Positions 21,615 to 48,480 of a DNA stretch of 64,000 nt are shown here, one piece after another. Under the pieces are notes generated by a model. That model worked only from the letters and a program-made list of their open reading frames with translations. It had not been told where the DNA came from and did no database searches. The DNA is taken from contig NEEC01000010.1 of assembly GCA_002189035.1 (NCBI GenBank), positions 2,790,001-2,854,000 of the forward strand, written 5' to 3'. The DNA is from Utricularia gibba. Taxonomy: Eukaryota; Plantae; Magnoliophyta. Positions within the stretch are counted from its first letter, which is position 1. Each line of letters starts with the position of its first letter. The position numbers were made by a program, and so were the translations under genes.

Positions 21615-22785
21615 AACACTACCGCCGCCCAAACTCAAAAACAAAGAACCAATCGCACACCGGATTTCCAAAAAAACAAACGAAACCTACAAAAACAATA
21701 TTAGACAGCTCTGTACTCGCCGAGCGGCGGTAGCGGCGTCGACAGAAACGCGGAGAAGCCAAGGATCGGGAAACCGAGACAAAGATTCCCGCAAGCAGTG
21801 ACTGTGTAGGAGCAACGTCTGCAGGTAAAGCTTTCCCCCAGGGTTTTTATATCGACGGCTGACTCAGCCACTTGCCCTTCCCAAAACTCCAGTAAACTCG
21901 TTAGGTAGACAAATGAGCTTGGCGTACTTGGAAAGCTATTTTTTCATCATTAATTATAATAATAGCTAATAATATCTCCATTTTAACTCCGCCCTTATTT
22001 TAATTTAATTTTAATTGGATAAGCCTAGTTTCTGTACCACATTTTTAAATTGGATGGATTTTCATTTTACAATCAATATACAGTTTAATCATTAATTTTC
22101 AAAATTATATTGTTGTCATTTCAACTTGTTTTTTTATAAATAATTTGATTTTAAATTTATGAAATTACATATTTAATTTTTACATTATCAAAACTAATCG
22201 ATTTTAGATCTTAATATTTTGCCCCAAAATTATAAACATTACGAGGTACAAACATGATATAACTTTAATATAGATATCACTCGATTCTTTGAACACGAAT
22301 TCAAAAAAATTTAACACAAAATTTTTTTGGATTCAAAATAAAAATATTATGAAGCCGTTCATTTTTTTACAAATTTTGAAAAACATTTAGATCTTCAATT
22401 GCAAATTTTTTACAACTTAAAATATTTTTTTGTAATTTTAAAATTTGAACATTAAATTCCTTATATTAACTGAAAATTGAGATATTTTTCTTATAATTTT
22501 TAGTTGATTATGTATCATTTGTTTATATGATTTATGAACGATTAACATATAAAGTTGCAATAAATTTATACGAATGAATAACTAATTTATTACATATTTT
22601 ATAAAATTATACACCACAAATATCACTTAATATATTATAAGTATTATTAAATATATCTGGTTATTTTATTATTATTTGTTTAAAAAAGTTATTGATCATT
22701 AAACCCTAAGCCCTGAATCACCAAACGAATGTCTTATTTATTCAAAAGAATGCCAAATGGTGATCCTTCTTCGGTGCTGGTTCCA

Positions 22786-25700
22786 TCAGCCAATACATTT
22801 ACGGTACATGGCTAGAGCCCAGATCGGGAATACATTCCGATAGAGTGGGTAGTGCAGAATGCAGTTTCTCAAGAAGGCTCCAGAAAGTTCCTGAAACTTC
22901 CATTCTCAGTTACTGGATCAAGAGTGCAGTAAACGTTGATTTAGTTACCTGCTGGGGGAAATCTCCATCCTCCAACTGGGCGTTGATCAGAAGCCTTGCT
23001 GCACGGTTGAGTGGGGTGATGTCTCTCTGTGCCTGGAATAAATAATACTTTTTTTAATTTAATATAACAACAAATGGACTGTTGGGTTGGGCTGATGATT
23101 GACCTGGCCCGAATGCATGAGGCCCAACATGGCCCATGAGGTTTGCACCAAGTTTGAGCGATCTCCTTCCAGTGCCACGTACTCCTGTTATTTAATAATT
23201 TTAATTAATTAAGCGTATGTATATATTATTTACATGTTTTCAGAGCTTACCTTCTTAGGGCAAGAAAGGTAGGATTCTCCCCAACCGCCGTCGTCCCTCT
23301 GCGTGCTTAAGAGAAAATTAACTCCTCGACGGATGGCGGAGCAATTCTGGTATGTATTGCCGGCGGCGGATAGTCCGGAGAGTGCGAACCAAGCGCCGTA
23401 GGTGAAGCAAACTGCCCAACTCCCGTACCTTGCAAAACAATATGCTATCGATGATGGTGATTGGGATCGTAAGTGTTGAAGTTCTTTTACCATGAGCCAT
23501 CGGGTCTTTGAATACTCTTGATGTATTCATCAGCTTTCTTGATGGCGATCTCGATTTCTTTATTAAGGTGGTGGGGGTGCAGTTTCTTGAACAGAACTAG
23601 GGCCTCGATTGATGCAGCTGTGCATTCCACGTACTCGTATTCCACGACGATACCTTCGTAAAACTCCGAAGGATTCAGCAACTGCAAAATGTGCTTTTTT
23701 TTTCGGATGAAGTTTAATCGGTTTGGAATGTGGATGTGGGAACCTACCTCAAGCCACTTTGATGCCCCTGCTGGCTCCCAAGCTGAAAAGCCACCATTTT
23801 TGCTCTGCAGTTGTAAACCGTGAGATGGGACAAAATGGAATGGATTATGCCCAACGCGTGTCTGTGAAAAAGTCTCACTTGCAAATACATGATCACATTG
23901 ACAGCATCGTGGAGTTTCACGTCTTTCATCTTGTCTCCAACGATTTCCGGTGACATCATGGAGAAGAGAAGGCAACACTGATAAACAGAAACTCAAAGGG
24001 ATGTCTTTTCCATCAAGAATCAAAATACCAATGGATTGCAAGCGTACCTTTAAACCCTCTGCGGTGCAATCGGAGACTGGCAATCCATGATCTTGATCAG
24101 AAAATGTCCATGATCCTCTAGAAATATGCCGGTACATACTCCGGAAATCACCTGAAGGATTATCCTTCACCTGCATGTGAGTAGCTATTGATATATCTGT
24201 TGATTTGCAGCGTGGCTAGAACATTTGTAATGAAGTAGCAACCTGAGATTTCTTTATGAACTCATGACCCCTCTTTAAGGTCTCTCCTATCTCATCAGTG
24301 AGATCACATTCCAATAATGCTTGTATGGCAGAACTTGCATCCCACAGCTGACTGCCAATACTCTGTTTATGAACCCATGATCAGTTATTGTCAGTTCTAG
24401 ATCATGGATTGTGAGCATTTTTGTTTATAATAACTGAATAAAGCATCGCACTGGTACATTACCTGCATCTTCATGCCATCCTCCGCTACCCACATGTAAT
24501 CGGGGATGCGGGCGAGGTGTTTCTTGACGTACTCCCCCTGAGGATCCTCAACCCAACAAGCCATCAAGCAAAGTGCCTTCTCTATGCAGCCTATGGTAAT
24601 GTATCTACTGTTTTCATCTTCATAATGAACGTGTTTCATGGTAACTTGCAGAGCTTTGTCCCTCAGCTTATAGAAAGGCCAGCGAGACAGTAGAGGCTCA
24701 GCAATTGCATAGCAAGCATCCCAAATGAAGTCCTGTACAAATCCATGCGCATAATACAGATCCTCCTGCCATAGCATACAGGTTTTCAGATCTTGCTCCT
24801 TCCTCTTCATTAAGTGTAATTCATTATCAATGACTAACCTTTGCGCATACTTTTCGCAGGCTTCTCCAATCAATCTTCTCGTAAGGCTCATCATATAACT
24901 CTTGTCTGAGTTCTAAGATCAGAGGAGTGATTGGAGCTACAAATCTCTTGCCATACAAGTAGGACATTGGCATGTAAACCGTACGACAATAACACATCAT
25001 TTTGCCTGCCATTTGAAATAAGATATATCATGTCAACCTGTGTCATGAAAAAGGAAAACAGACAGAAGAGGACCTGGATGCATTGGGAGATATGAAGGGA
25101 ACAACCAGAATTCAGGTGGCATCGGGTTAGTACCGGACCAATCGTACAACCCGATTATCTGAAAATAGGAACAATCATGTACATGTTTCACTAGTCTCAA
25201 TCTCTGAAAGTTTAGAGTTGAGAAAGAGTACCGATAGATAAGTCTTGCCCCAAGAAGGGATGGCCTTAACCGTTCCGTGGTCCATGATCCACTTCCTAGC
25301 TTTGATGCAGGAGGTATTGTTGCTGTCTACGCCCAGAATCCTCATGCAAATGTAACTTAGTGCAGTGCAGAACATCATGCTGTGACCTTCTACATGGAAC
25401 CCCCATCCTCCATCTTCATTCTATCATCAATTCTCAAGTATGTTGTACAGTTTTTTCTCTTGTGCTTAAATTGTTATCTCGTTCTAGTTCTTACCCAAAA
25501 TTGAGTTAGTTTACCTGATGGCAGTACAGATAACGAAGAATCTCTCTGCAGTGTTGGGGTGAGAAAACAGTATTGAGGCATCCCATCATGTACAAGGTCA
25601 TCACCTGCATGGCGTAAGTGGCAAGGTTGAAAAAATTGCAACGCTTTATTTCTAAAACAGGCAAAGGCGAATGCTTTACCAGTGGCGGTAGAAAGTACAG

Positions 25701-26135
25701 CGGGCCGGAGTTTTCTGCGGGCCAGTGGCCGTCGCTGGCTTGCAACGTCGCCAAAAAATGAACCCCACGCCGGAGAGCGGCGGTGGCTTTCTCATGACTC
25801 ACATCTTCATCATCACCCACCCTCACTTGCTGTATCCTTTGCCGAAAGTTACTCTCATGCAAATACTGCACAATTCAGCATGCTATGTAAGTTGGCAATA
25901 ATCACTTGTTCATAAAATTTTCGAACGCAAATACCTGCATCCGCCATAGGAGATCACCGTTTGCCTTCACACGGTGGCGATTCTCCCAAAAGTCACTTCG
26001 GGCCTTCTCCACTGCTTCCCGGAGCTCCGGTGTGCCGTAGTCCTCATCGAAAGTCCACGTCTGTCTTCCCACAAAGTTGTTAGTGGTGTAGAGGTAAGGA
26101 TTATTGTCTCCCTGAGCAACTTTGAGTCTCCACAT
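22786..26135 (-). CDS. Oxidosqualene cyclase OSC1 (non-sterol triterpene synthase type), about 16 exons, apparently intact
   Basis: MWRLKVA start; NFVGRQTW; [11 protein letters not shown]; MMCYCR; SDCTAE catalytic motif; QW repeats ([27 protein letters not shown]); last exon [26 protein letters not shown]; stop 22786-22788. Confidence 0.95.
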
Positions 26136-26813
26136 GACTGACTACTTGCTATGCTGCGAAGAAAAAATATGATGTCAATGATGGCTTTCTGAAATGCATG
26201 CATGTCGAAGTATTACATGAAAAAACCAAGGTTTGTTTGTCATTTGCAGGCTAGAGAGGAAGGGGGAGTATTCATGACTGGCAAACCTGAATGCCTTGGA
26301 GTTGCCACAAGTGACTCTGAGGAGAAAATGCCTGTGTATCTATAGTTCCATACTACAACAGTAGCTCTGCCTGCATCTTTTATGGGGAGGTAGGAGGTCT
26401 ACATTTACTGCAAGCACGGAGAAGGACATGCATTCAGGCAATTTTTTCTAAAAAACAAAGAATCAAGTTGGAGGGCTGGAGGTATGCAACGATCATCATG
26501 TAATAATTAATGATCCAATATAATTGCTTCACCGTGACCATCTTCCATTCCCTGGACTCTGACACTTTTCAAATCCTAAGGTTTTGCATCACACTCTCCT
26601 GTATTTTGGAGAAATAGGAAATTGTCCTAATCCATAAGCTACACAATTTTTTTACCTGATACGTGTTAAATGTGTGAGTTTTTTACCTATTTTGTTAGAA
26701 ACCATGTCAGACTATATATTTTATTATATTAATTATAAATTTTTTATAATTATAATTAAAAGTATGCATATTTTAATAAAAATATGTTTTATAGTAAAAT
26801 GTTATGTTAATAT

Positions 26814-27365
26814 CTGTGATTGTGACTCGGGTTTCAAAACCGGTTTGACCGGTCAAACTCTGAGTTTGACCGATCAATATATATTATATTAAAATTTATT
26901 TTATTATTATATAATAAAAGTACAAATATAATAACTTAAATCATTATTTGTCATATATAGATATAAAGATTGAGTTTTCATTAATATTATTATTAAATAT
27001 TAATAATAAAGATCATTAACTATTATTATTAAGTTTTCATTAACTCAAACATTGAGCATAAAAAAACAGAGAAATGCATTGATTTTGAATGTCATTTACA
27101 TACCATTGCAATAACAAAACAAGTATTGAAAAATTAGCAAAATTAAAAATTGATAGTGTGCAATATTTATTCAATAGCTATATATAGTACTAAAATCTAT
27201 AAATAAACAATTATTACCCTGCAATTTGATAAAAATAATGGCAGGACTGTTTTTAATAAAAAAATCTTAAAAAATAGGTACTTGATAGACCCTTTAACCG
27301 GTAAAACAAGATAAATCGATTAATCGGTTTGACTCGCCGGTTAACCGGTCGAGTCACAATCACAG
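26814..27365. mobile_element. Non-autonomous hAT-type element / MITE (552 bp) upstream of OSC1
   Basis: 16-bp TIR CTGTGATTGTGACTCG ... CGAGTCACAATCACAG; perfect 8-bp TSD GTTAATAT (26806-26813, 27366-27373); subterminal ACCGG motifs. Confidence 0.88.
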
Positions 27366-28914
27366 GTTAATATTTATATTTTAATAAATATGATTCATAA
27401 AACAGAAAATAAACATATATTAAAAATAATAAAATAATAAAAAACATACGTAATAATCATAAATAAATAATTTGATTACCAATGATTATAGTTGAATAAT
27501 GTAAAAATCTTCATAAATATTATTAATAGTGAAAATGATTATTTGTAATAAAAAATATTTTTTCTATATTTTGGATTTGAAATGCTTTAATTTAGTAATA
27601 CTTCATACAAAAATTTCATGTATATTATACATATGTGTTATATTTTTAGTTATATATATGTGAATAGAATAAAATTGTAAAAAATTCACACACTAAACAC
27701 GTAATAGCTAAAATAATTGTGAAGGTAGTGTACCAGTTGGGGGAGTTAATTGGCTGTATAGCTGTACGTATTTTGCAAACCTTGATGTTAAGCCTGGTTC
27801 GGTTTGCAAATGAATATTTCACTTGCATATTAATAGTAATATTAACATTAGTATTTTTAATGAAATTTCATATATTAATATTAATTTCATATGTATATAC
27901 AATAGATAATAAATAAATTATTTTTAAAATTAAAGATTATATGTACTTTCATATAGTATAATTATATAAAAAAATTATTATAACATCCTACAATACATAT
28001 ATTTCTTATAATTTTTCTTTAAAATACTTATATTTTAAAATATTTTTAATTTGTAAACTACACGTATGATTTTTTACAAATTCTTTGCAAAATATTTTGC
28101 AAATGGATTTGTGAAATTACATGGATAAACCCAAGGGGCACCAGTTGGGGGCTGGGATGCGAGACGACTTGTTCAAAATGGAGAGACTGGAAACCCCAGA
28201 CTGCATGAGGTGTTTCAGACCTCCAAATAGTCCTATTGATCCAGGGTGATTTAAAAAAGTGACCACCCTATGTGTAAAATTTTTGCCTCAGTGCGTGAGA
28301 GAGAAAGTGACAGTGGCCATTGATCCATTGCCTACCACCAGCACGGGTCCTTTAGTTTTCTACCCACTGCAATTTAATGGTATTTGAAAAGTACCCACTA
28401 TGTGTTACTATGTTAAAAAAGTACCCATCTTCTAAAAATTATTTTTTATTTTATACTATTTTATTCATTTTTTATTAAATAAAGATGCAGTCCCACTAGA
28501 TCACCGCGCATGGTCAAGCGATTGTGCGGCGGGAATGGCACTTCATGCGTGCCAGTCCATCACCCGCCCGCACATGGCACGAGCGTCTTGTGCGAGGCGC
28601 AACCCGCACACGCTACCCTGACGCCGCTCCCTTGCATGCGAGGGCCGGCGTGCGTGCATCGTGCGCGACTTGATGCAAGGTCGGGACGTGCAGGCGTCCT
28701 GCATGAGTAGCCACCCGTGCATGCTACCCCAATGCCGCTTGTGCACATGCCCACATCGCCGCGTATCCCACATGACCAATGTACGCTGGAGCAGGGTGTG
28801 CGCCTCCATGCAGCGAGGATGACGCCTCGTCGCGCGCAAGCACTTCACCCACTTTCCCGCTTATTTAATATAATCAATATATATGTAATACAAAAATAAA
28901 TAAATTTAACTATA

Positions 28915-29960
28915 TAATAATAACTTTTTATCATATAATAATAAAAATTTATTATGATGAAATAAATAACTGAATTATTTGATTATCATGTGATGTATTT
29001 GTCACTTGTATGTTATTATGGTTGGTCTTCATAATTCTTTATATAATTTAAGTAAAATCTATGATCACTCAACAAATGAGTACATAAAAATTAAAATTAA
29101 TACATTTACATAAGTTGATTGTATATACAATCATTATATATATAACTAATATAATTTCTGATGAAATAGATTTTAACATCATATTTTTTTATAAATATGT
29201 TTAAAGATATAATAATAACTTTTCGTTATTTAGTAATAAATTTAAATTATATTGAAATAAATTTATTTAAATGAATTATTTGATTCGCATGTGATGTGTT
29301 TGCCACTTCACATAATAAATGAATTATGGTTGGCCTTGATAATTGTTTATATAATTTAAGTAAAATTTATGGCCACTTAACGAATAAGTACATAATAATT
29401 AAAATTAATACATTTGCATAACTTGATTGTATATATACTCAATATATATGTAACTAAATATCATTTTTGATGAAATAGATTTTAACATCATTTTTCCTAT
29501 AAATATATTTAAAGATGTAATAATAACTTTTTGTTATTTAGTAATAAATTTGTATTATATTGAAATAAATTTATTTAAATGAATTCTTTGATTAGCATGT
29601 GATGTGTTTGCCACTTCACATAATAAATGAATTATGGTTGGTCTTCATAATTGTTTATATAATTTAAGTAAAATCTATAGCCACTTAACGAATTAGTACA
29701 TAAAAATTAAAATTAATACATTTACATAAGTTGATTGTATATATAATCATTATATATATAACTAATATAATTTCTAATGAAATAGATTTTAACATCAATT
29801 TTCCTATAAATATATTTAAAGATATAATAATAACACTTTATCATTTAGTAATAAATTTATATTATGTTGAAATAAATTTATTCAAATGAATTGTTTAATT
29901 ATTATGTGATGTGTTTGTCACTTACATCTACATGTTATTATGGTTGGACTCCATAATTAT
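28915..29960. repeat. AT-rich tandem repeat inside the MULE, ~300-bp period, ~3.4 copies
   Basis: Unit starts ATAATAATAAC at ~28915, 29211, 29519, 29825; shared CATGTGATGT.TTTG.CACTT and TTATGGTTGG blocks. Confidence 0.85.
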
Positions 29961-30095
29961 TTATTTTGCATGGGCAATCATTAGGTCCACAATCATTAAT
30001 TTTAGAGCTTATAAATAGCCACACTCTCATTCGAGAGGTTATGCACAATCTTTGAATCTTTCTTGATATCTCTTCATTTGTTCTTGCAAATCTCA

Positions 30096-32819
30096 ATGAG
30101 GAAGCTGGTGCGTGTGAGGATTTTTGCTGAAGGCAATATCATCAACTATGGAGATTTTACAACTTATGATACGCCACCGATAGAATTTACGGATTTTGAT
30201 ATAAATATTGAAATGAAGGATCTCATCAATCAATTGTTTGCATTTTGTGGAATCAACTCCAACGAATATACGCTTAATCTATCTGCCCATTACTATGATC
30301 AGGAAAGTAATACAACGCGATACATGCCTATTTATTCACAGATGGAACTTTCTTATATTTTTCATCCAAGTTATATTACTTTACCGGTGAATTTGTATGT
30401 TAGTTCCAGAAAATCTGTCACTCCCTCCTATTTAGGAGATCCCTCAACATATTTTAACAACTTTCCAAGTAGTTATATTAATGTTGAAGATAATGATGTT
30501 TCAGCAGCTTCAAGGGAAAGTGAAGAAGGTATGTTGCATAATTAATTTTATTAACTTTAGCATTTTATGATATATTATAATTTTAATGTATGATATGTAT
30601 TATGAATCTAATTCACATCTCATATATTAGAAGAGTATGCAAATTATGATTTTGGAGTGGCTCCAAATCCTGATGGTGATGCTTATTGGGATTATGACAA
30701 TGGACACCAAGTTCTAGGAGCAGAACTCCCACCTGAAACCAATGAGTCTGATGATGAAAATGATACAAATGATGAAAATATTATTGAACTCGAGGAAGAG
30801 GAATATGAATCTCCATTTACTATTGGTCAGCTATTTGCAGATAAAGAAGACTTTCATAATGCTGTGCGAAATCACATGATCAAAATTGGCAAGGAATATA
30901 TTGTGCATGATAGCGAGCCAAGAGTTCTAGATCTTCGTTACCCCATGTTTGGAGAACAACAGTGTAGATGGAGAATTCGTGCAGCACATTATAAAAAAAT
31001 CAATAGATGGAAGGTGAATAAACTGACTGAGCCTCATATTTGTCGGCGCCTTGGAGGAAGGTTTTTTAATCACAAGAATATCAATGTAACGTATATTGCA
31101 GAAAAGACCAAGCCGTATGTTCAAGCTGATATTGGGACAAAAGTATCTACAATTGTTACTAAAATCATACAGGAAACTGGTTATACTATACCATATCACA
31201 GAGCTTGGTTTGGAAGGCAAAGAGCATTTCAATTGCTCTATGGTTCTTGGGAGGAGTTAGTTCCGAAACTCCCTTCTTTTTTGCAGGAAGTAATGCTTCA
31301 AAATCAAGGAACAGTAATTGACTATAAACATCGGCAAGATGGCGAAACATTACATTATGTATTTTGGGCATTTGGACCGTGTATACGTGCATACCAGCAT
31401 ACACTCCCTGTTATCTCCGTCGATGCAACACATTTGTATTCCTCTTACAAGCATAAACTACTTATTGCAGTGACACTTACACCACTTCGGAAGATGTTGC
31501 CTCTTGCCTTTGCTGTTGTAGATGAGGAGACAGATGAATCTTGGCATTGGTTTTTACAACACATTGGTACTTATATTATATTGGATAAGCCAACATGTCT
31601 AATATCTGATTGATGTGGTTCAATAAGAAAGGGAGCACGACTTGTGTCTGCGTTTAGTGAAGAGCATGGAGGATGTCATTGATATTGCATTTGACATCTT
31701 CGAGCAAATCTTATGGATAAATTTAAAACTCCCGGAGTCAGAGATTGGTTCAACAAAGCGGCACATTCAAGTTACATTGATAAATTTGAAGAATACATGA
31801 ATAACATTAAACATCTTAATGTTAGGGCATGGGAATACCTGCATGCAATTCCTGCGCAAAAATGGACTTTGTCTTATGATGGTGGCAAGAGATATGGTAC
31901 TATGACAACCAATCAAGTAGAAGGAATAAACTGTGTGCTTTTGGGTGCACGACATCTTCCATTAACACCATTAGCTCAGGTATTATATTAACATCATTTT
32001 AAATAAAATATTTTAATCTAATATGTGTATACCTCCCGTAGGCAACATTCACACGGTGCAAAAAATATATGTATGAAGGTTTGGAAGAGGTTCTTAATAT
32101 GGAGCGTCAAAACAAAGTATTCAGCAAAGAAGCTGAACTCCTACTAAAGCGATGGGATAGACCAATCCCATATACAAATGTTGAGGTTTATGATCGTCGA
32201 CATAAGGTGGTTCGAGTCACAACTATTCGGAAGAATGGCTTGGAGAATGTGTGTTTCGTTAAAATCAAAGATCAAACTTGCACTTGTACCAAATGGCAAA
32301 ATTATGGTATACCGTGCTCTCATGCACAACAAGTAATTTCTCAAACCACAACTTGCTTTATATTTTTAAATACAATATTAATTATATACAAATTGTTTTG
32401 CATGAATAGGCTTGCAAGCTTCTTGGGATCGATCCACTAACATTAGTCAATCCAATCCACCTTCTACGCATCTATTGAATGCATATTGAAATCAATTTCA
32501 GCCACTCAGAACTGAGAAACATTGGCCCTCACCACTAGTGGTTCTTCGTGTTGATCCTGAACGTGCTAGACATGTTCGTCGTGGACGCCATCGTAGTACA
32601 CGCTTTCCAATGAACATGGATAGAGGAAGACATAGACATGTGAAAACGGGATATATGCATGTGGATGAAGACACAACTCCAAGTCATTCACAACCACATA
32701 GATCATCTGTGGATGTGCCATATGGACACAACTTCGAGCCGATTCCTCAACCGCCACGTGCCTCTATACAAGAACGTCCACAAAACCTGAACTTCGACCC
32801 ACCAGGACCATCGAATTAA
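30096..32819 (+). pseudogene. MuDR/MULE transposase with premature stops
   Basis: MuDR domain (GQLFADKEDF..AV; C.WRIRA), DDE motifs SVDATH, LISD, TTNQVEGIN; SWIM finger CTCTKWQNYGIPCSH; TGA at 31611, 31680, 31692. Confidence 0.9.
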
Positions 32820-33344
32820 CAACGACGTAAGAAAAATGCATTTCAAAGAATGTTTAATTTTTTTTCATAAAATGATGTAAACGCTGCAATTTATTATATA
32901 TGTTGGTTATATTGATCATATTTAATTATGTTATATTGAAATTTTTTTTGTATATTTAGCTTTATTTATAATAAATATGTTGTTAAATCTATTTCATAAG
33001 AAACTATATTTAATTACATATATATATATATATATATATTGATTATACATATAGTCAATTTTAAAAAGTGCATGTGTAGTTATATGATTTATAATGAAAT
33101 CAATATTACATATTTATTTATTTACATTTTTTATAAATATAATAGCTATTTTTGTTATAAAAAATACAATATCATATAATATGAATAAAAAACATGAATA
33201 CTTAACAAATTAATAAATCAAAAAAGAGCTAGTGTGATCACAATTCCAGAATTAGATATTTGACTAATAGATTTTTTAAAAGATTTATTTTATTAAAAAA
33301 ATTTGGTAATGAATAATGATATATATTTTATGATTACTAACTAG

Positions 33345-33487
33345 TAGGATGTTTGGGCGAAACTAAGTGGATGTCCGAACCGACTAATGTTGAAGAATTA
33401 GCGAATGAGTCGTGGTTGGGGGTGAAATGCCATTCAAACCTAGAACTAGCTGGTTCTCCCCAAAATGCGTTGGGTGCAGTAGTTTGA
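33345..33487 (+). other. rrn23 (fragment): Nuclear plastid DNA (NUPT): fragment of chloroplast 23S rRNA gene
   Basis: GAAACTAAGTGGA.GTCCGAACCGACT.ATGTTGAAGAAT.AGCG.ATGAG...TGGTT.GGGGTGAAATGCC....AACC.AGA.CTAGCTGGTTCTCCCC.AAATGCGTTG matches plastid 23S as recalled; differences are mostly C>T/G>A. Confidence 0.85.
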
Positions 33488-34437
33488 TTAAAGTGAAAAA
33501 TTAGTTATATTTTTAATGTTTTATAATTCTTTTTATATTTAATTATCATATATTTAGCATAAATTAATAATTTTCACATAATTTATCAAATTTACATAAT
33601 AAAATAAATAGAAAATAAAATTAAAACTCATGTCCGGTATCCGAGTAGATAAAATGAATATATAGGATTTTTGTTTAATAGAAATTGAGTAAAATAGAGT
33701 AGAATAAAAAATAATTTTTAGAAGATGGGTACTTTTTTAACATAGTAGCACATAGTGGGTACTTTTCAAATACCATTAAGTTACAGTGGGTAGAAAAGTA
33801 AAAAACTCCCACCAGCACCGACATTGAATGCTCTAGTGACAGTTCGACCGGGAGATGGATGCCTTGACCCCATCGTTATCCTTTTACCAGCATGCATTCT
33901 GAGATTAGCAGAGCCGCAGCTGGAGAAGTTAAAACAAAAAACAATCATTCACCAATTTGAGCCGGCCACCAATGTAAGAGGGGTGGTAGCCCATTAGGAT
34001 ATTGTGGCCCAAACAGGATATTCTGTTTCGCTTTATTTCTTGAAAAATTCATTGAAAAAATATTGTGAAAAATAAAGATAAATTTTTAAAAAATTAGTAT
34101 TTTTAATTACATTTTTTATAAATATTATTAAATTATATTTAATAGTAATATATTAGTATATATATAAGTATATTATAATTGAAAATGTTAATTATATATA
34201 AAATTTTAAGGTATAGATATAATTAACTTTATCTCATTTAGTCATATAAAACTGATATACATATATTAATTAATTTATTTATAATTTATACGTAAACTTA
34301 ATTATAAATTTTCTATACTATGATATCAAATATAATTTTGAAAAATTGCGATTCAAGGCTCGTAAACGGAGGAGATGAGAAATCTCAATGGAATGGCATA
34401 TTCCTTGCAGGGGCCGAAGGATGATGCCTCAACCCAC

Positions 34438-34850
34438 AGGATCGGAAAACGGGGACAAAGATTCCCGCAAGCAGTGACTGCAGCAGCAACGTCTCCAGGT
34501 AAAGCTTTCCGCCAGGGTTTTTATACCGACGGCTGACTCAGCCGCTTGCCTTTCCCAAAACTCGAGTAAACTATTTGACTGTATTTGATAGAAATTATAA
34601 ATTGAAATAATTAAATAGAACAAAAAACAATATATTTGGTACATAGGATAAATTATATTATTTATAAATATGAAATAAAATAATTCAAAAGTATAGAATA
34701 TAATAAAATTTTACTATCATATACATCATCTTTATATATTTTCTTATCTTTAATATAATTTTTATATATACCAAACATAATCGTTAGGTAGACAAATGAC
34801 CTTGGCGTACTTGGAAAGCTATTTTTTAATCATTAAATATAATAAAACTA
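34438..34850 (-). promoter_or_regulatory. Duplicated copy of the ADNT1 upstream region (21762-21960), including TATA box, interrupted by a ~210-bp AT-rich insertion
   Basis: Shared blocks ACAAAGATTCCCGCAAGCAGTGACTG, GGCTGACTCAGCC and CGTTAGGTAGACAAATGA.CTTGGCGTACTTGGAAAGCTATTTTTT; minus-strand TATAAAA at 21845-21851 and 34519-34525. Confidence 0.8.
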
Positions 34851-35216
34851 AACTATGTCCATTTCATTTCGACTGGAAATTCCAACTTTATATATTACAT
34901 TTAGATAAAAAAAATTTATACATAATGATCATTTAGTCATATAATCTATCAAACACAAAATATTATAAATATTTATTTATATTTAGATACAATGTTATAA
35001 AACACATATCCAATATAAATAACAAATATCTGTTTATCTAAACAATAATAATTTTAGTGAACAATAAATTAAACAATCGTATCAAACTAGACCTAAAGTT
35101 ATAATTAAATATATCTCATTATTTATTTTTTTAAAAAAAAACTTATTGAACACTTAACAAATGGCTTATTCATTTAAAAGGATGCCAAATGGTGAACCCT
35201 CATCAGTGATGTTCCA

Positions 35217-38200
35217 TCAGCCAATACATTTACGGTACATGGCAAGAGCCCAGATAGGGAACACATTCCGATAGAGTGGGTAGTGCAGAATGCAGTTTCT
35301 CATGAAGGCTCCAGAAAGTTCCTGAAACTTCCATTCTCAGTTACTGGATCAAGAGTGCAGTAAACGTTGATTTAGTTACCTGCTGGGGGAAATCTCCATC
35401 CTCCAACTGGGCGTTGATCAGAAGCCTTGCTGCACGGTTGAGTGGGGTGATGTCTCTCTGTGCCTGGAATAAATAATACTTTTTTTAATTTAATATAACA
35501 ACAAATGGACTGTTGGGTTGGGCTGATGATTGACCTGGCCCGAATGCATGAGGCCCAACATGGCCCATGATGTTTGGACCAAGTTTGAGCGATTTCCTTC
35601 CAGTGCCACGTACTCCTGTTATTTAATAATTTTAATTCATTAATCGTTTGAATATATTATTTATTTATTTATTTTCCAGAACTTACCTTCTTTGGGCAAG
35701 AAAGGTAGGATTCTCCCCAGCCGCCGTCGTCCCTCTGGGTGCTTAAGAGAAAATTAACTCCTCGACGGATGGCGGAGCAATTCTGATATGTATTGCCGGC
35801 GGCAGATAGTCCGGAGAGTGCGAACCATGCGCCGTAGGTGAAGCAAACTGCCCAACTCCCGTACCTTGCAAAACAATATGCCATCGATTATGGTGATTGG
35901 AATCGTAAGTGTCGAAGTTCTTTTACCATGAGCCATCGGGTCTTTGAATGATCTTGATGTATTCAACGGCTTTCTTGATGGATATCCCGATTTCTTTATT
36001 AAGGTGGTGGGGGTGCAGTTTCTTGAACAGAACTAGGGCCTGGATTGATGCAGCTGTGCATTCCACGCACTCGTGTTCCACAACGATATCTTCGTAAAAC
36101 TCCGAAGGATTCAGCAACTGCAAAATGTGTTCTTTTTTTTTTTCGGATGAAGTTTAATCGGCTTGGAATGTGGATGTACGAACCTACCTCAAGCCACTTT
36201 GATGCCCCTGCTGGCTCCCAAACCGGAACGCCGCCATTTTTGCTCTGCAGTTATCAACCGTGAGATGGGACAAAATCGAATGGATTATGCCCAAAGCGTG
36301 TTTGTTAAAAGTCTCACTTGCAAATACATGATCATATTGACAGCATCGTGGAGTTTCACGTCTTCTAGCTTGTCTCCAACGATTTCCGGTGACATCATGG
36401 AGAAGAGAAGGCAACACTGAGAAAGAGAAGATCAAATAGATGTCTTTTCCATCAAGAATCAAGATACCAATGGATTGCAAGTGTACCTTCAAACCCTCTG
36501 CGGTGCAATCGGAGACTCCCCATCCCTGATCTTGATCAGAAAATGTCCATGATCCTCTAGAAATATGCCGGTACATACTCCGGAAATCACCTGAAGGATT
36601 ATCCTTTACCTGCATGTGAGTAGCTATTGATATATCTGTTGATTTGCAGCGTGACTAGAACATTTGTAATGAAGTAGCAACCTGAGATTTCTTTATGAAC
36701 TCATGACCCCTCTTTAAGGTCTCTCCTATCTCACCAGTGAGATCACATTCCAATAATGCTTGTATGGCAAAAGATGCATCCCACAGTTGACTGCCAAAAG
36801 TCTGTTTATGAACACAAGATCAGTTATCTCAGTTCTAGATCATGGATTGTGAGCATCTTTGTTTATAATAACTGAATAAATCATCGCACTGGTACATTAC
36901 CTGCATCTTCATGCCATCCTCCGCTACCCACATGTAATCGGGGATGCGGGCGAGGTGTTTCTTCACGTACTCCCCCTGAGGATCCTCAACCCAACAAGCC
37001 ATCAAGCAAAGTGCCTTCTCTATGCAGCCTATGGTAATGTATCTACTGTTTTCATCTTCATAATGAACGTGTTTCATGGTAACTTGCAGAGCTTTGTCCC
37101 TCAACTTATTGAAAGGCCAGCGAGAAAGTAGAGGCTCTGCAATTACATAGCAAGCATCCCAAATGAAGTCCTGTACAAATCCATGCGCATAATACAGATC
37201 CTCCTGCCATAGCATACAGGTTTTCAGATCTTGCTCCTTCCTCTTCATTAAGTATAACTCATTATCAATGACTAACCTTTGCGCATACTTTTCGCAGGCT
37301 TCTCCAATCAATCTTTTCGTAAGGCTCATCATATAACTCTTGTCTGAGTTCTAAGATCAGAGGAGTGATTGGAGCTACAAATCTCTTGCCATACAAGTAG
37401 GACATCGGCATGTAAACCGTACGACAATAACACATCATTTTGGCTGTCATTTGAAATAAGATATATGATGTCAACCTGCATCATGAAAAAGGAAAACAGA
37501 CAGAAGAGGACCTGGATGCATTGGGAGATATGAAGGGAACAACCAGAATTCAGGTGGCATCGGGTTAGTACCGGACCAATCATACAACCCGATTATCTGA
37601 AAATAGGAACAATTATGTGCATGTTTCACTAGTCTCAATCTCTGAAAGTCTAGAGTTGAGAGAGAGTACCGATAGATAAGTCTTGCCCCAAGAAGGAATG
37701 GCCTTAACCGTTCCGTGGTCCATGATCCACTTCCTAGCTTTGACACAAGCGCTATTCTTGTTGTCTACGCCCAGAATCCTCATGCAAAGGTAACTTAGTG
37801 CAGTGCAGAACATCATGCTGTGACCTGCTACATGGAACCCCCATCCTCCATCTTCATTCTGTCATCAATTCTCAAGTATGTTTTTACTTTTTTTTCGCGT
37901 TTGCTCCAATTTTCATCTCATTTTAGTTGTTGCCCAAAATATTACTTAGTTTACCTGGTGGCAGTACAGATAACGAAGAATCTCTCTGCAGTGTTGGGGT
38001 GAGAAAACTGTGTTGAGGCATCCCATCATGTTCAAGGCCATCACCTGCATGGCTTAAGTGGCAAGGTTGAAAAAACTGGAACTCTTTATTTCTTAAACAG
38101 GCAAAGGCGAATGCTTTACCAGTGGCGGTAGAAAGTAGAGTGGACCGGCGTTTTCCGCGGGCCAGTGGCCGTCGCTGGCTTGCAACGCCGCCAAAAAATG

Positions 38201-38575
38201 AACCCCACGTCGGAGAGCGGCGGTGGCTTTCTCATGACTCACATCTTCATCGTCACCCACCCTCACTTGCTGTATCCTTTGCCGAAACTTTCTCTCATGC
38301 AAAGACTGCACAGTTCAGCATGCTATATAAGTTGGCAATGATCACCTGTTCAGAAAATTTTCCAACGCAATTACCTGCATCCGCCATAGGAGATCACTGT
38401 TGGCCTTCACACGGTGGCGATTCTCCCAAAAGTTACTTCTTGCCTTCTCCACTGCTTCCCGGAGCTCCGGTGTGCCGTAGTCCTCATCGAAAATCCACGT
38501 CTGTCTTCCTACAAAGTTGTTAGTTGTGTAGAGGTAAGGATTATTGTCTCCCTGAGCAACTTTGAGTCTCCACAT
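35217..38575 (-). CDS. Oxidosqualene cyclase OSC2, apparently intact
   Basis: Same exon structure as OSC1; [44 protein letters not shown]; stop 35217-35219. Confidence 0.94.
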
Positions 38576-39544
38576 GACTGACCACTTCTATGCTGCAAAG
38601 GAAGTATGATGTCAATGATAGCATGACTGACCACTTCGTCATTTGCAGGCTAGAGAGGAAGGGGAAGTAGTAGAGAATGGCAAACCTGACTGCCTTGGAG
38701 TTGACACAGGTGACTCTGAGGAGAAATCCCCTGCTTATCTAGTTCCATACTGCAAGAGTAGCTCTGCCTTCATCTTTTATGGTGAGGTAGGAGCTCTACA
38801 TTTACTGCATGCACGGAGAAGGGCACGCATGCAGGCAATTTTTCTAAAAATCTAAGAATCGAACAGGAGGGCTGGAGGGCCACGCATTGCAGACAGCTAG
38901 GTTGTTGTCCTTTTCAAGGTATGCAACGACGATCTTGTAACAATAAATGATCGAACATTTACACCCCGTGACCATCTTCCATTCCTTAGACTCTGAGACT
39001 TTTTAAATCCTTAGGTTTTCCATCACACTCCCTGGACTTTGGTCGGATTGTCCAAGAAGCCTCAGAATCAAGAAGCCCGCCCCCGGTTCCAATCAGATAC
39101 CGAGGCTCGATCCCAAAAAATGCACGCTGATCAAGATGCTGTACAACCTTCCTCCAAAGCATACGGTTTTCTGCCAAATCGCCCCAATCATCTGCTATTT
39201 GCATTTTACCCTACTAATAGAGTTTCTTTGCGTTTTACCTTACTAAAGACAAGATGAAAGTAGGGTAAAACACAAGTAAAATTTTAAAAGTAGGATATTT
39301 ACCCTATTTCCTCGATCTTCTTCTATATGAATCCTATGTGAGAATTGTTAACTGGGGGACAGAGCCAGACGACTTGTTCAAAATGGAGGGGCGGCTGGAA
39401 ACCCCAGACTGCATGCAGTGCATCAGACCTCCAGATGTTGATCCTATCACAACTACCCACACCGACATTGAATGCTCTACTGACAGTTCCACTGTGGGAT
39501 GAATGCCTGGCTCAGTCGACCTTGTACGGGTGTCAGACGGCTGC

Positions 39545-41929: not shown

Positions 41930-42520
41930 ACACAAATGGCATTCATCGCATGTACACTACTACATGGTACAGGCACAGCATTCGTGCACTACTAAAAAAC
42001 TTGATCGATCACCAGGGAGGAGCATCCATGGCATGCCCCATCAGAGCATCAACCCGACACCAACGATACCCAACCCCACCACGAAAACCACAGCATACTT
42101 ACCGATGCCACAACATCCACCAGATCTATGGTCGGGTTTTTTCCGGCTCGTATTGATCCTTGACCTCCTCCTCATTGGTTTCCAAGGTGGAAGTAATGGA
42201 GATCCTGGAAATGCTTGATGACCTTACTGCGTAGAGCCAGCAAATATGTATTGTTTTCCAGCTTCAAAAGTCGGAGCCACTGCTTATAGGCAAAGAGATG
42301 AGATGCTTGTCTCAGGAAAAGCTTGTTTTGCAATGTTATCGGACTCTCTGGCACGTGTTTGAGAATGATGCAGAGCATCTAGTATCCGTGAGGTATCTCC
42401 ATCCATCCTCCCAACGTCTCCAAGGGCAGAGCTATAAGCAGAAGAATGATAGAGAAATAAGGAAACCAAGCACAAGACATTTTTTAAGAAAGCTAGAGGT
42501 GCATGATTTTGTAATAGTTT
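41930..42520 (-). pseudogene. Orphan duplicate of the last exon of the gene at 50428-51900, with a 29-bp deletion
   Basis: Near-identical to 50340-50985; one ACAAGCTTG-flanked 29-bp segment (50752-50780) is lost; no upstream exon. Confidence 0.88.
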
Positions 42521-42609
42521 CACTAAACCCTAAGCCCTAAATCACCAAACGAATGTCTTATTTATTCAAAAGGATGCCAAATGGTGATCCTTCTTCGCTG
42601 CTGGTTCCA

Positions 42610-45600
42610 TCAGCCAATACATTTACGGTACACGGCAAGAGCCCAGATCGGGAATACATTCCGATAGAGTGGGTAGTGGGCAATGCAGTTTCTCATGAAG
42701 GCTCCAGTACGTTCCTGAAAATTCCATTCTCAATGACTCAGTAAGTTCCTGAAAATTCCATTCTCAAGCGTGCAGTAAACGTTGATTGAGTTACCTGCTG
42801 GGGAAATCTCCATCCTCCAACTGGGCGTTGATCAGAAGCCTTGCTGCACGGTTGAGTGGGGTGATGTCCCTCTGTGCCTGGAATAAATAATACTTTTTTT
42901 AATTTAATATAACAACAAATGGACTGTTGGGTTGGGCTGATGATTGACCTGGCCCGAATGCATGAGGCCCAACATGGCCCATGATGTTTGGACCAAGTTT
43001 GAGCGATTTCCTTCCAGTGCCACGTACTCCTGTTATTTAATAATTTTAATTCATTAATCGTTTGAATATATTATTTATTTATTTATTTTCCAGAACTTAC
43101 CTTCTTTGGGCAAGAAAGGTAGGATTCTCCCCAGCCGCCGTCGTCCCTCTGGGTGCTTAAGAGAAAATTAACTCCTCGACGGATGGCGGAGCAATTCTGA
43201 TATGTATTGCCGGCGGCAGATAGTCCGGAGAGTGCGAACCATGCTGTCAATATGATCATGTATTTGCAAGTGAGACTTTTTAACAAACACGCTTTGGGCA
43301 TAATCCATTCGATTTTGTCCCATCTCACGGTTGATAACTGCAGAGCAAAAATGGCGGCGTTCCGGTTTGGGAGCCAGCAGGGGCATCAAAGTGGCTTGAG
43401 GTAGGTTCGTACATCCACATTCAAGCCGATTAAACTTCATCCGAAAAAAAAAAGAACACATTTTGCAGTTGCTGAATCCTTCGGAGTTTTACGAAGATAT
43501 CGTTGTGGAACACGAGTGCGTGGAATGCACAGCTGCATCAATCCAGGCCCTAGTTCTGTTCAAGAAACTGCACCCCCACCACCTTAATAAAGAAATCGGG
43601 ATATCCATCAAGAAAGCCGTTGAATACATCAAGATCATTCAAAGACCCGATGGCTCATGGTAAAAAAACTTCGACACTTACGATTCCAATCACCATAATC
43701 GATGGCATATTGTTTTGCAAGGTACGGGAGTTGGGCAGTTTGCTTCACCTACGGCGCGGAGTTTCACGTCTTCCATCTTGTCTCCAACGATTTCCGGTGA
43801 CATCATGGAGAAGAGAAGGCAACACTGAGAAATAGAAACTCAAAGGGATGTCTTTTCCATCAAGAATCAAAATACCAATGGATTGCAAGTGTACCTTCAA
43901 ACCCTCTGCGGTGCAATCGGAGACTGGCCATCCATGATCTTGATCAGAAAATGTCCATGATCCTCTAGAAATATGCCGGTACATACTCCGGAAATCACCT
44001 GAAGGATTATCCTTCACCTGCATATGAGTAGCTATTGATATATCTATTGATTTGCAGCGTGGCTAGAACATTTGTAATGAAGTAGCAACCTGAGAGTTCT
44101 TTATGAACTCATGACCCCTCTTTAAGGTCTCTCCTATCTCACCAGTGAGATCACATTCCAATAATGCTTGTATGGCAAAAGATGCATCCCACAGTTGACT
44201 GCCAAAAGTCTGTTTATGAACACAAGATCAGTTATCTCAGTTCTAGATCATGGATTGTGAGCATCTTTGTTTATAATAACTGAATAAATCATCGCACTGG
44301 TACATTACCTGCATCTTCATGCCATCCTCCGCTACCCACATGTAATCGGGGATGCGGGCGAGGTGTTTCTTGACGTACTCCCCCTGAGGATCCTCAACCC
44401 AACAAGCCATCAAGCAAAGTGCCTTCTCTATGCAGCCTATGGTAATGTATCTACTGTTTTCATCTTCATAATGAATGTGTTTCATGGTAACTTGCAGAGC
44501 TTTGTCCCGTAGCTTAATGAAAGGCCAGCGAGACAGTAGAGGCTCAGCAATTAAATAGCAAGCATCCCAAATGAAGTCCTGTACAAATCCATGTGCATAA
44601 TACAAATCCTCCTGCCAGAGAATACAGGTTTTCAGATCTTGCTCCTTCCTCTTCATTAAGTATAACTCATTATCAATGACTAACCTTTGCGCATACTTTT
44701 CGCAGGCTTCTCCAATCAATCTTTCGTAAGGCTCATCATATAACTCTTGTCTGAGTTCTAAGATCAGAGGAGTGATTGGAGCTACAAATCTCTTGCCATA
44801 CAAGTAGGACATCGGCATGTACACCATACGACAATAAGGCATCATTTTGGCTGTCATTTGAAATAAGATCTATGATGTCAACCTGCATCATGAAAAAGGA
44901 AAACAGACAGAAGAGGACCTGGATGTATTGGGAGATATGAAGGGAACAACCAGAATTCAGGTGGCATCGGGTTAGTACCGGACCAATCGTACAACCCGAT
45001 TATCTGAAAATAGGAACAATCATGTATATGTTTAACCAGTCTCAATCTCTGAAAGTTTAGAGTTGAGAGAGAGTACAGACAGATAGATAAGTCTTGCCCC
45101 ACGAAGGGATGGCCTTAACCGTTCCGTGGTCCATGATCCACTTCCTAGCTTTGATGCAGGAGGTATTGTTGCTGTCTACGCCCAGAATCCTCATGCAAAG
45201 GTAACTTAGTGCAGTGCAGAACATCATGCTGTGACCTGCTACATGGAACCCCCATCCTCCATCTTCATTCTGTCATCAATTCTCAAGTATGTTTTTACTT
45301 TTTTTTCGCGTTTGCTCCAATTTTCATCTCATTTTAGTTGTTGCCCAAAATATTACTTAGTTTACCTGGTGGCAGTACAGATAACGAAGAATCTCTCTGC
45401 AGTGTTGGGGTGAGAAAACTGTGTTGAGGCATCCCATCATGTACAAGGCCATCACCTGCATGGCTTAAGTGGCAAGGTTGAAAAAATTGGAACGCTTTAT
45501 TTCTTAAACAGGCAAAGGCGAATGCTTTACCAGTGGCGGTAGAAAGTACAGCGGGCCGGCGTTTTCTGCGGGCCAGTGGCCGTCGCTGGCTTGCAACGCC

Positions 45601-45981
45601 GCGAAATAATGAACCCACGTCGTAGAGCGGCGGTGGCTTTCTCATGACTCACATCTTCATCGTCGCCCACCCTCACTTGCTGTATCCTTTGCCGAAAGTT
45701 ACTCTCGTGCAAATACTGCACAGTTCAGCATGGTATATAAGTTGGCATCTTGATCAGCATGCATTTTCCAACGCAAATACCTGCGTCCGCCATAGGAGAT
45801 CACCGTTTGCCTTCACAGTGTGGCGATTCTCCCAAAAGTCACTTCGGGCCTTCTCCACTGCTTCCCGGAGCTCCGGTGTGCCGTAGTCCTCATCGAAGGT
45901 CCACGTCTGTCTTCCCACAAAGTTGTTAGTTGTGTAGAGGTAAGGATTATTGTCTCCCTGAGCAACTCTGAGTCTCCACAT
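42610..45981 (-). pseudogene. Oxidosqualene cyclase OSC3, disrupted by an internal inversion
   Basis: All OSC exons present, but 43245-43755 is on the + strand ([20 protein letters not shown]...[14 protein letters not shown]); MMPYCR; additional 1-bp deletions at ~42800, ~44722, ~45615. Confidence 0.93.
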
Positions 45982-48222: not shown

Positions 48223-48480
48223 GAAAAAGGGTACAGTGCCCCCTTTTAAAGTTTTCACGTACTAAGCAAAAAAGCTGTAACTGCAAGATCACATTTTTGA
48301 GAGCCTGTTCTTTGTATTTACACTTGTATGTTTGTAAGGGAGAAAAGGGAAGGAATGAAGTAGTTTTGAGAATAGCAGATCAAAGAAAGTCAGTTTAGTT
48401 TTGGTTGGAGTTTGGTGAAAAACTGGAATAGTATGATTTGATGATTGAACTATTCATTCTACTACAAGATAGCAGCACCA

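Follow-up and report, generated by a model that had tools for sequence, protein, structure and literature searches.

Oxidosqualene cyclases (OSCs) determine which carbon skeleton a plant triterpenoid has, without exception, and new scaffolds are being sought among those whose cavities are non-canonical. The 64-kb stretch of Utricularia gibba DNA analysed here (the window) contains two close paralogues, OSC1 and OSC2, in which the best-known product-steering residue of these enzymes has naturally changed from Trp to Met. Do such genes still encode beta-amyrin synthases (bAS), do they make other known pentacyclic triterpenes, or have they moved on to skeletons of their own, as was proposed when the locus was first annotated?

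Two intact genes and a decaying third copy

With a full-length plant OSC as the guide, spliced alignment gives two minus-strand gene models of 16 exons and 752 aa each, and both genes have Pfam matches to SQHop_cyclase_N (PF13249, E ~1e-11) in exon 4 and SQHop_cyclase_C (PF13243, E ~4e-12) in exon 13. The coding region of OSC1 (22786..26135) runs from the ATG at 26135 to the stop at 22786, with exons at 26135-25935, 25865-25680, 25604-25515, 25420-25232, 25158-25074, 25005-24839, 24765-24463, 24362-24243, 24170-24048, 23977-23879, 23804-23748, 23681-23491, 23428-23251, 23184-23104, 23032-22949 and 22890-22786. That of OSC2 (35217..38575) runs from the ATG at 38575 to the stop at 35217, with exons at 38575-38375, 38305-38120, 38044-37955, 37858-37670, 37596-37512, 37443-37277, 37203-36901, 36801-36682, 36609-36487, 36416-36318, 36244-36188, 36117-35927, 35864-35687, 35615-35535, 35463-35380 and 35321-35217. 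All 15 introns in each gene are GT-AG (58-100 nt), and each 2259-nt CDS has a single stop, at its end. The two proteins are 94.3% identical, with 43 differences over 752 aa. The first-pass annotation reported two intact OSC genes with these same ends, and the open frames, canonical splicing and branch dN/dS values below 1 bear it out; its copy number was right for the intact genes, and a third tandem copy, the pseudogene OSC3 (42613..45981, minus strand), has to be added.

A six-frame scan recovers all of the motifs quoted for the two genes, on the minus strand and at the positions originally reported. Apart from those taken up below, they comprise VEGHS in OSC1 (25379-25393) and VAGHS in OSC2 (37817-37831), a 12-residue motif that differs between the copies (OSC1 24327-24362; OSC2 36766-36801), GGFSAWEP (OSC1 23772-23795) and GGVPVWEP (OSC2 36212-36235), and GAFLRN (OSC1 22864-22881) and GAFMRN (OSC2 35295-35312).

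In OSC3, MMCYCR is replaced by MMPYCR, and a 520-bp segment (43238..43757) that is 99% identical to OSC2 35829-36349 is inverted; the inversion junction is also present in a 1188-nt contig of run X1. When the inversion is computationally reversed, OSC3 still has frameshifts and an internal stop. The inverted segment belongs to a near-identity tract of ~1 kb between OSC2 and OSC3 (about 35430-36400 in OSC2), which also includes GGVPVWEP and EHECVECT. OSC3 exchanges sequence with OSC2, and some of the odd residues of OSC2 may derive from this decaying copy.

The RNA-like runs X7 and X12 contain spliced contigs with minus-strand GT..AG introns, and six of the modelled OSC2 CDS introns match CT..AC joints in such contigs. 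An X12 contig over exons 13-16 has OSC1-specific bases. A further CT..AC joint in an X12 contig, one not tied to a single paralogue, marks a 5' UTR intron at 38593..38685 (minus strand). In assembled Logan contigs, 32 of the 40 variant letters listed for the OSC2 region match OSC1 and/or OSC3. Gln475 of OSC2 is not fixed: an OSC2-type contig of run X12 has His at this position.

The open reading frames that reach 110 aa in the window are those of a kinase, a RING protein, a DUF1191 protein, a MULE transposase, two bHLH proteins, an AAA ATPase and a copia reverse transcriptase. At this length threshold, which genes with small exons could escape, there is no P450, glycosyltransferase or acyltransferase near the OSCs, and the combination of an OSC with tailoring genes that makes a triterpene biosynthetic gene cluster is not seen in the 64 kb.

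Placement among beta-amyrin synthases

Relatives were gathered by way of exon 7 and then with the full-length matches P0011 and P0217. Each list is made up of the 120 proteins nearest to a canonical enzyme, and closer kin of OSC1 and OSC2 than the listed relatives may exist.

Both proteins align over their full length with 152 OSCs. The catalytic Asp481 and its partner cysteines, Cys482 and Cys560, are present in each copy, and the DCTAE motif that contains Asp481 is intact (OSC1 24057..24071; OSC2 36496..36510, both minus strand); it lies within another 12-residue motif that differs between the two (OSC1 24057-24092; OSC2 36496-36531). There are four strict Q...G.W matches in both OSC1 and OSC2, the same in number and place as in the Perilla and Genlisea bAS. 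The aromatic cage (Trp216, Trp414, Phe470, Trp530, Trp608, Phe724 and Tyr732) is kept in both. At the fourth position of the MxCYCR motif, Tyr separates OSCs of the dammarenyl route from sterol-type enzymes, which have His (MWCHCR) (PMC4346913, PMC13657253); both copies have Tyr (Tyr256), the pentacyclic-type rather than the sterol-type state.

In an IQ-TREE phylogeny calculated with the LG+C20 mixture model and rooted on the lupeol synthase clade, the pair is nested in a Lamiales bAS clade of 13 rows (SH-aLRT 100), where the Genlisea aurea bAS is its sister (SH-aLRT 90); its stem, which accounts for the greater part of the divergence, has a length of 0.32. FastTree, with 154 rows, gives the same placement. 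The phylogenetic check suggested in the first-pass annotation thus puts the pair inside the Lamiales bAS, on a long stem. OSC1 and OSC2 lack the marks of lupeol synthases: they fall outside the clade of the Bruguiera and Euphorbia enzymes and have Met rather than Leu at the steering residue. Nor do they have MWCYCR, the functional bAS signature, whose Trp stabilises the later cations; it reads MMCYCR in both copies. The two genes form a local, quickly diverged offshoot of the ordinary bAS family.

Residue changes and selection

The MMCYCR motif lies at 24983-25000 in OSC1 and at 37421-37438 in OSC2, and the codon for its second Met, Met254, at 24995..24997 and 37433..37435, respectively (all minus strand). 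By alignment, Met254 corresponds to Trp257 of the Euphorbia tirucalli bAS and to Trp230 of human lanosterol synthase (LSS). Among the 152 relatives this column has Trp in 108, Phe in 24 and Leu in 13; counted separately as a motif, MMCYCR occurs in three of the 152. A change from TGG (Trp) to ATG (Met) takes two steps, with TTG (Leu) and AGG (Arg) as the only one-step intermediates. MMCYCR had been presented as a special signature of this locus; in fact it is found in a Sesamum paralogue, in Corymbia and in all of the Capsicum cluster members read, with independent origins in the tree. A full-text literature search returned neither a match to MMCYCR, which is likewise absent from the supplements of a large OSC-mining paper, nor a characterised enzyme with Met at the second position of the motif.

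Besides Trp to Met at 254, the copies share non-canonical cavity residues at positions 367 (Val to Ile) and 548 (Phe to Tyr). OSC1 has its own derived changes Phe409Ile (also F413I), Trp477Leu adjoining DCTAE, and Met725Leu (also M729L). Those of OSC2 are Ala529Val, directly before Trp530 (also Trp534), together with Tyr557Cys and His475Gln; the last two, and Tyr134Asn of the same copy, fall on columns with 93-96% agreement among the 152 relatives. OSC1 and OSC2 also deviate, by His302Lys and His699Asn, at two positions that are invariant in all 152 relatives compared. At 260 columns with a conservation of 95% or more, OSC1 departs 19 times and OSC2 18 times, against a median of 3.5. In support of the first-pass annotation, alignment and literature together put derived substitutions peculiar to each copy at positions where mutagenesis changes OSC products. 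By a hand count against what we take to be the list of cavity positions, ~6-10 of the 43 differences between the copies are at or adjoin the cavity, which is suggestive only.

One of the quoted differences has to be read anew. The change from EYEYVECT in OSC1 (23619-23642) to EHECVECT in OSC2 (36055-36078) was taken for the loss of the residue equivalent to human LSS Tyr503 and yeast Tyr510. This is wrong: in the alignment to human LSS (1W6K), the YVECT Tyr pairs with human Tyr530, and Tyr503 pairs with the GG..WEP Trp, a residue retained in OSC1 and OSC2 alike.

The pairwise dN/dS between OSC1 and OSC2 is 0.265 (~0.27), at a synonymous divergence of ~0.10. Branch values from the three copies, which are approximate because the copies are gene-conversion mosaics, are 0.20 (p = 6e-6) and, for OSC2 with 17 non-synonymous and 17 synonymous changes, 0.27 (p = 2e-4), both significantly below 1; the value for the pseudogene OSC3 is 0.48. 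Conserved columns hold 28% of the OSC1-OSC2 differences, compared with a median of 17% and a 95th percentile of 36% in 73 control OSC pairs. The genes are under purifying selection, and there is no burst of positive selection; with a dN/dS of 0.27 and a conserved-column share under the control 95th percentile, the earlier description of the pair as a case of rapid neofunctionalisation is not supported. The Genlisea branch is also long, and Lentibulariaceae-type lineages evolve fast in general, so some of the divergence may be without functional meaning.

Expected products and known systems

The explanation we prefer, at a probability of about 0.55, is that OSC1 and OSC2 are functional recent duplicates of a Lamiales bAS offshoot that would make known pentacyclic triterpenes rather than pure beta-amyrin. 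In this reading, Met replaced the Trp of MWCYCR that stabilises the D/E rings on their shared stem, where Ile367 and Tyr548 also took over from Val and Phe; after the duplication each copy gained a few more cavity-zone changes (at 409, 477 and 725 in OSC1, and at 529, 557 and 475 in OSC2). Both enzymes would protonate 2,3-oxidosqualene and cyclise it via the dammarenyl cation, as bAS does, and the aliphatic Met254 is expected to act like the Leu of lupeol synthases, making it likelier that the reaction ends at the lupenyl cation or one close to it. We would therefore expect lupeol, germanicol or a mixed amyrin-type output, in ratios that probably differ between the two enzymes. According to Kushiro et al., as quoted in PMC9634032, changing the motif Trp to Leu makes a bAS mainly lupeol-forming, and the opposite holds for the reverse change. 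Among characterised enzymes, MWCYCR is found in 66 of 85 bAS and MLCYCR in 19 of 33 lupeol synthases (PMC13657253); the motif is a loose rule for predicting products, and this counts against our preferred explanation.

Those same figures leave 19 of the 85 characterised bAS without MWCYCR (PMC13657253), in keeping with another account in which both copies are plain, redundant bAS and the deviant residues are drift tolerated in a fast lineage. The position of the pair within the bAS clade, next to a Genlisea enzyme that is canonical throughout, fits this account, as do the purifying selection on both genes and the Capsicum cluster members read, all of which are annotated as bAS and have MMCYCR; the Capsicum names, however, are automatic annotations rather than assays. 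Drift sits poorly with 19 and 18 departures at highly conserved columns, with Phe409Ile and Trp477Leu in OSC1, and with a shared Trp-to-Met change at a residue where aliphatic replacement redirects the product, and we consider it unlikely. Somewhat less probable again is that one or both copies, OSC2 being the likelier, have lost activity or are turning into pseudogenes, as OSC3 has already done. The substitutions of OSC2 at the 93-96% columns, its near-identical tract with the pseudogene and the unfixed Gln475 would suit such decay; against it are an open frame with canonical splice sites throughout, a branch omega of 0.27, significantly below neutrality, and an intact catalytic Asp, partner Cys and aromatic cage.

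The view originally taken of the locus, that the genes have neofunctionalised and make different, rare or undescribed triterpene skeletons, now appears very improbable. It can draw on the non-canonical combinations of cavity residues, which differ between the copies, and on one study of mined non-canonical OSCs, in which three of six candidates yielded stereoisomers that were rare or new (PMC11951148). That Met254, Ile367 and Tyr548, joined by Ile409, Leu477 and Leu725 in OSC1 or by Val529 and Cys557 in OSC2, could reshape the cavity toward different rare or undescribed scaffolds or stereoisomers is a similarly long shot. Non-synonymous change is not in excess, the differences show no unusual concentration on conserved columns when set against other tandem OSC pairs, 73% identity to canonical bAS is kept along with the aromatic cage, MMCYCR recurs in several families, and the supposed loss of the Tyr503 equivalent, a key argument, came from a wrong alignment. 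Given purifying selection and an ordinary bAS family, an altered product is a reasonable expectation for the two genes, though as candidates they do not stand out. Since a natural Met variant is found here in two close backgrounds that differ at three or four other known tuning positions, the pair also makes a compact test set for residue interactions.

Known systems provide the frame for this reading. Canonical Lamiales bAS (Genlisea aurea EPS65499, Perilla, Sesamum and Erythranthe) have 72-73% full-length identity with OSC1 and OSC2 and share DCTAE, the QW repeats and the aromatic cage; they differ in carrying GVFMKN and further motif sequence (39 residues), from all of which the pair deviates. 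The same Trp-to-Met change within the bAS clade is seen in Sesamum indicum XP_011085901, the Capsicum 'beta-amyrin synthase' cluster and Corymbia citriodora KAF8037356. The Corymbia protein also has SIGSQ and the GAF.RN variant in common with OSC1 and OSC2, but the other changes of the pair are missing from these MMCYCR proteins, none of which was found to be characterised. MLCYCR lupeol synthases (for example olive OEW and Bruguiera LUPS) resemble the pair in having an aliphatic residue instead of the motif Trp; that residue is Leu rather than Met, and they form a separate clade. For friedelin synthases there is a solved plant OSC structure, TwOSC (PDB 8J5Z), which aligns over its full length with the canonical relative P0217. 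The product-tuning residues Gly533, Lys729 and Leu552 of MiFRS correspond to positions 529, 725 and 548 of OSC1 and OSC2, all of them varied; friedelin synthases have other residues at these positions and fall in another clade. The ordinary background for judging OSC1 and OSC2 is given by tandem OSC arrays of other plants, for example the bAS-like pairs of Vitis and Rosa used as controls, which are 92-97% identical, have up to 41% of their differences on conserved columns and show no difference from our pair that matters. Other plants, too, have young tandem OSC duplicates whose motifs are altered, so the pair described here comes as no surprise and is a routine candidate for screening by expression.

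Gene models in a three-copy array

The window holds three tandem copies of an oxidosqualene cyclase (OSC) gene, not the two of the first-pass annotation. A blastn self-comparison places the copy unit of OSC1 at 22714-26609, that of OSC2 at 35147-39042 (91.4% identity to OSC1 over 3.9 kb) and that of OSC3 at 42548-46352 (93% identity to OSC2); no further OSC fragments were found within the window. In a six-frame motif scan, every peptide quoted in that annotation was recovered on the minus strand at the expected place, including MMCYCR at 24983-25000 in OSC1 and at 37421-37438 in OSC2. Gene models were built by a purpose-written splice-aware protein-to-genome alignment guided by P0011 (a full-length plant OSC of 759 aa, reached via an exon 7 search), with the last exon adjusted to the natural stop. 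OSC1 and OSC2 each have 16 exons, 15 of 15 introns GT-AG (58-100 nt) and a coding sequence (CDS) of 2259 nt, or 752 aa, whose single stop is terminal; thus, the two genes are intact, as had been claimed. The earlier observation is correct and complete except that it overlooked the third copy and equated one residue wrongly. The two proteins share 94.3% identity (43 differences), with 96.0% CDS identity and differences at 7.0% of aligned intron sites.

OSC3 is a pseudogene. Its motif reads MMPYCR, some of its parts align solely to the opposite strand, and with the inversion undone for analysis the frame is still broken in several exons and contains a stop. In the self-comparison, the inverted segment (43238-43757, 520 bp) is an inverted copy of OSC2 35829-36349 at 99% identity; the inversion is clean and lies inside a tract of about 1 kb with 99.5-100% identity to OSC2. 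In a contig of 1188 nt from X1, a DNA-like sequencing run, 35829-36221 (+) is fused to 36350-37144 (-), which recreates the inverted junction; therefore, the inversion is unlikely to be confined to this assembly.

Sliding-window identity (35100-39100 against 22667-26667 and 42450-46500) gives a mosaic in which the closest pair switches between windows: identity between OSC2 and OSC3 reaches 99.5-100% across about 35430-36230 and in several shorter stretches, elsewhere the most similar pair is OSC1 and OSC3, and several 200-bp windows reach 100% identity between copies. This mosaic indicates repeated gene conversion, with the copies exchanging sequence. Since GGVPVWEP and EHECVECT of OSC2 fall in a tract common to OSC2 and OSC3, some odd OSC2 residues may have been acquired from, or donated to, the decaying copy.

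The other ORFs in the window with a length of 110 aa or more code for a protein kinase, a RING protein, DUF1191, a MULE transposase, two bHLH proteins, an AAA ATPase and a copia reverse transcriptase. None of these ORFs codes for a P450, glycosyltransferase or acyltransferase, so the window gives no sign of a biosynthetic cluster. OSC1 and OSC2 are separated by an 8.5-kb spacer, which contains the MULE ORF (30657-31613, plus strand; MULE transposase and MuDR DNA-binding domains). Just beyond OSC3, two helix-loop-helix ORFs (47602-48258 and 49076-49789, minus strand) look like a tandem bHLH pair, although a regulatory link to the OSC array would be pure speculation. Further minus-strand ORFs encode the At3g28540/BCS1-like AAA ATPase (478 aa, 56866-58302) and the Ty1/copia reverse transcriptase (773 aa, 61616-63937).

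Transcription of the array

The OSC family is transcribed and correctly spliced. Runs containing OSC2 words were identified, and the contigs of four (X1 and X5, apparently DNA-like; X7 and X12, apparently RNA-like) were mapped onto 35100-39100. X7 and X12 contigs skip 35321-35378, 35463-35533, 36610-36681, 36802-36900, 38045-38119 and 38306-38374, whose CT..AC plus-strand ends are GT..AG on the minus strand and which exactly match six modelled OSC2 introns; another RNA-like contig joint marks an extra intron in the 5' UTR (38593-38685). Contigs of X1 and X5 on 35100-39100 have no joints of this kind. Many contigs placed at 95-99% identity derive from paralogues rather than OSC2, because 32 of the 40 best-supported variant letters are the OSC1 and/or OSC3 base at the same site. 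Across exons 13-16, one X12 contig carries bases found in OSC1 only, and its X7 counterpart has the sequence type of OSC2 or OSC3; expression of OSC1 has reasonable support. Gln475 of OSC2 (36526, DQGWGV) is polymorphic, since an unspliced X12 contig (36391-36551) that otherwise follows OSC2 across intron 9 and as far as codon 478 has His at codon 475 and reads DHGWGV.

At three other RNA-like contig joints (35904-36004, 37216-37295 and 37875-37970), the skipped parts are bounded by GT..AG on the plus strand, which is antisense to the OSC genes; the one at 35904-36004, inside the tract inverted in OSC3, might reflect cryptic splicing in a transcript from OSC3. X7 and X12 contigs also both skip 71 nt within exon 7 (37034-37104), with non-canonical GT..AA plus-strand ends and an expected frame shift. 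Possible sources are a deleted paralogue at another genomic site, aberrant splicing and an artefact of assembly.

Selection and active-site residues

Rapid neofunctionalisation, as proposed in the first-pass annotation, is not borne out by the substitution pattern. OSC1 and OSC2 have a pairwise dN/dS of 0.265 (dN 0.027, dS 0.100; Nei-Gojobori). For branch counts, each change was assigned to the odd copy out of three, with the inverted segment excluded; because the copies exchange sequence, these estimates are only approximate: 14 non-synonymous and 19 synonymous changes for OSC1 (omega 0.20, p against neutrality 6e-6), 17 and 17 for OSC2 (0.27, 2e-4), and 18 and 10 for OSC3 (0.48, 0.07). Thus, both intact genes have been under purifying selection since their separation, with no sign of an adaptive burst in their pairwise or branch dN/dS. 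Columns at least 90% conserved hold 12 of the 43 differences (28%), which is on the high side yet inside the ordinary range of 73 control OSC pairs at 90-97% identity (median 17%, 95th percentile 36%, maximum 41%, the highest shares belonging to Vitis and Rosa paralogue pairs).

Residues (OSC1/OSC2 numbering) were mapped by aligning P0217, a canonical plant OSC, to human lanosterol synthase (LSS, 1W6K) and through a multiple alignment of OSCs. Met254 corresponds to human Trp230, Tyr256 to His232, Ile367 to Ile338, Asp481 to Asp455, Tyr548 to Phe521, Cys560 to Cys533 and Phe724 to Phe696. OSC2 had been said to lose the equivalent of human Tyr503 (yeast Tyr510); this is mistaken, because that column is Trp530 (the W of GG..WEP), conserved in both copies, and the YVECT Tyr (position 557) is human Tyr530. 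Also kept in both are Trp216, Tyr256, Tyr261, Trp414, Phe470, Val479, Asp481, Cys482, Cys560, Trp608, Phe724, Leu730 and Tyr732.

Copy-specific changes include positions with a mutational record in other OSCs. In OSC1, the Phe of SFGSQ, which is Phe413 in E. tirucalli, has become Ile; a Trp that lies four residues ahead of the catalytic Asp, and that 151 of 152 relatives share, has become Leu; and Met729 (position 725 here) is likewise replaced by Leu. OSC2 has Val directly before Trp534 (Trp530 here), the position of MiFRS Gly533, where a Gly-to-Ala change raised friedelin yield 1.8-fold (PMC13737970). Residues 314 and 370 (P0217 317 and 373) are Gly and Ala in both copies, and Pro and Val in beta-amyrin synthases (bAS). 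An Ilex asprella paper uses so-numbered positions to set apart mixed alpha/beta-amyrin synthases (T/S/G and S/P); the correspondence is uncertain, since, of the eleven positions that the paper lists, only five fit our numbering (254, 263, 317, 354, 373 and 375 were tested; 254 also matches).

Of 260 columns with at least 95% conservation across 152 relatives, 19 are changed in OSC1 and 18 in OSC2 (median 3.5), and two other sequences of the set are equally deviant. Shared departures include Trp220Tyr, Val367Ile and, at positions invariant in 152 of 152 relatives, His302Lys and His699Asn. MMCYCR is not the special signature it had seemed: it occurs in one Sesamum indicum paralogue (its sister copy has MWCYCR), in 12 of 12 read members of a Capsicum cluster from five species, and in Corymbia. 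These carriers sit in separate parts of the tree, so the Trp-to-Met change has arisen independently at least four times. Two steps separate TGG from ATG, and the possible codons one step away from both are limited to TTG (Leu) and AGG (Arg); a lupeol-synthase-like Leu stage is therefore plausible. A full-text literature search for MMCYCR found no mention of it. The MxCYCR rule itself is loose, being followed by 66 of 85 bAS and 19 of 33 lupeol synthases (PMC13657253); Trp/Leu swap experiments at the motif are summarised in PMC9634032.

Placement and likely products

In both genes, exons 4 and 13 match the Pfam squalene-hopene/oxidosqualene cyclase N and C domains, and the proteins have DCTAE and four strict QW matches, the same as canonical relatives. 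About 170 named plant OSCs were collected by two word-indexed searches seeded with full-length relatives. FastTree (154 rows) and IQ-TREE with a site-mixture model (41 rows) agree, and the phylogeny that the first-pass annotation had suggested nests the pair within the Lamiales bAS group (SH-aLRT 100), with the Genlisea enzyme as sister (SH-aLRT 90) and a long stem (0.32 changes per site). The plant probably belongs to Lentibulariaceae, and Utricularia gibba would be consistent with the run history.

Judged from sequence, the best reading of OSC1 and OSC2 is that they are functional and lineage-specific within the bAS clade, with altered product-steering residues. Because the motif Trp is replaced by an aliphatic Met, the product would more likely be lupeol-type or mixed than pure beta-amyrin, and the copy-specific changes make differing product ratios plausible. 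A new triterpene skeleton from either enzyme is possible but unsupported; the pair merits a routine expression assay.

Among the local BLASTP matches listed, the best is Genlisea aurea bAS (73%), followed by Perilla and Sesamum (72-73%). The Genlisea protein is canonical at every motif; thus, the unusual residues arose on the OSC1/OSC2 stem or later.
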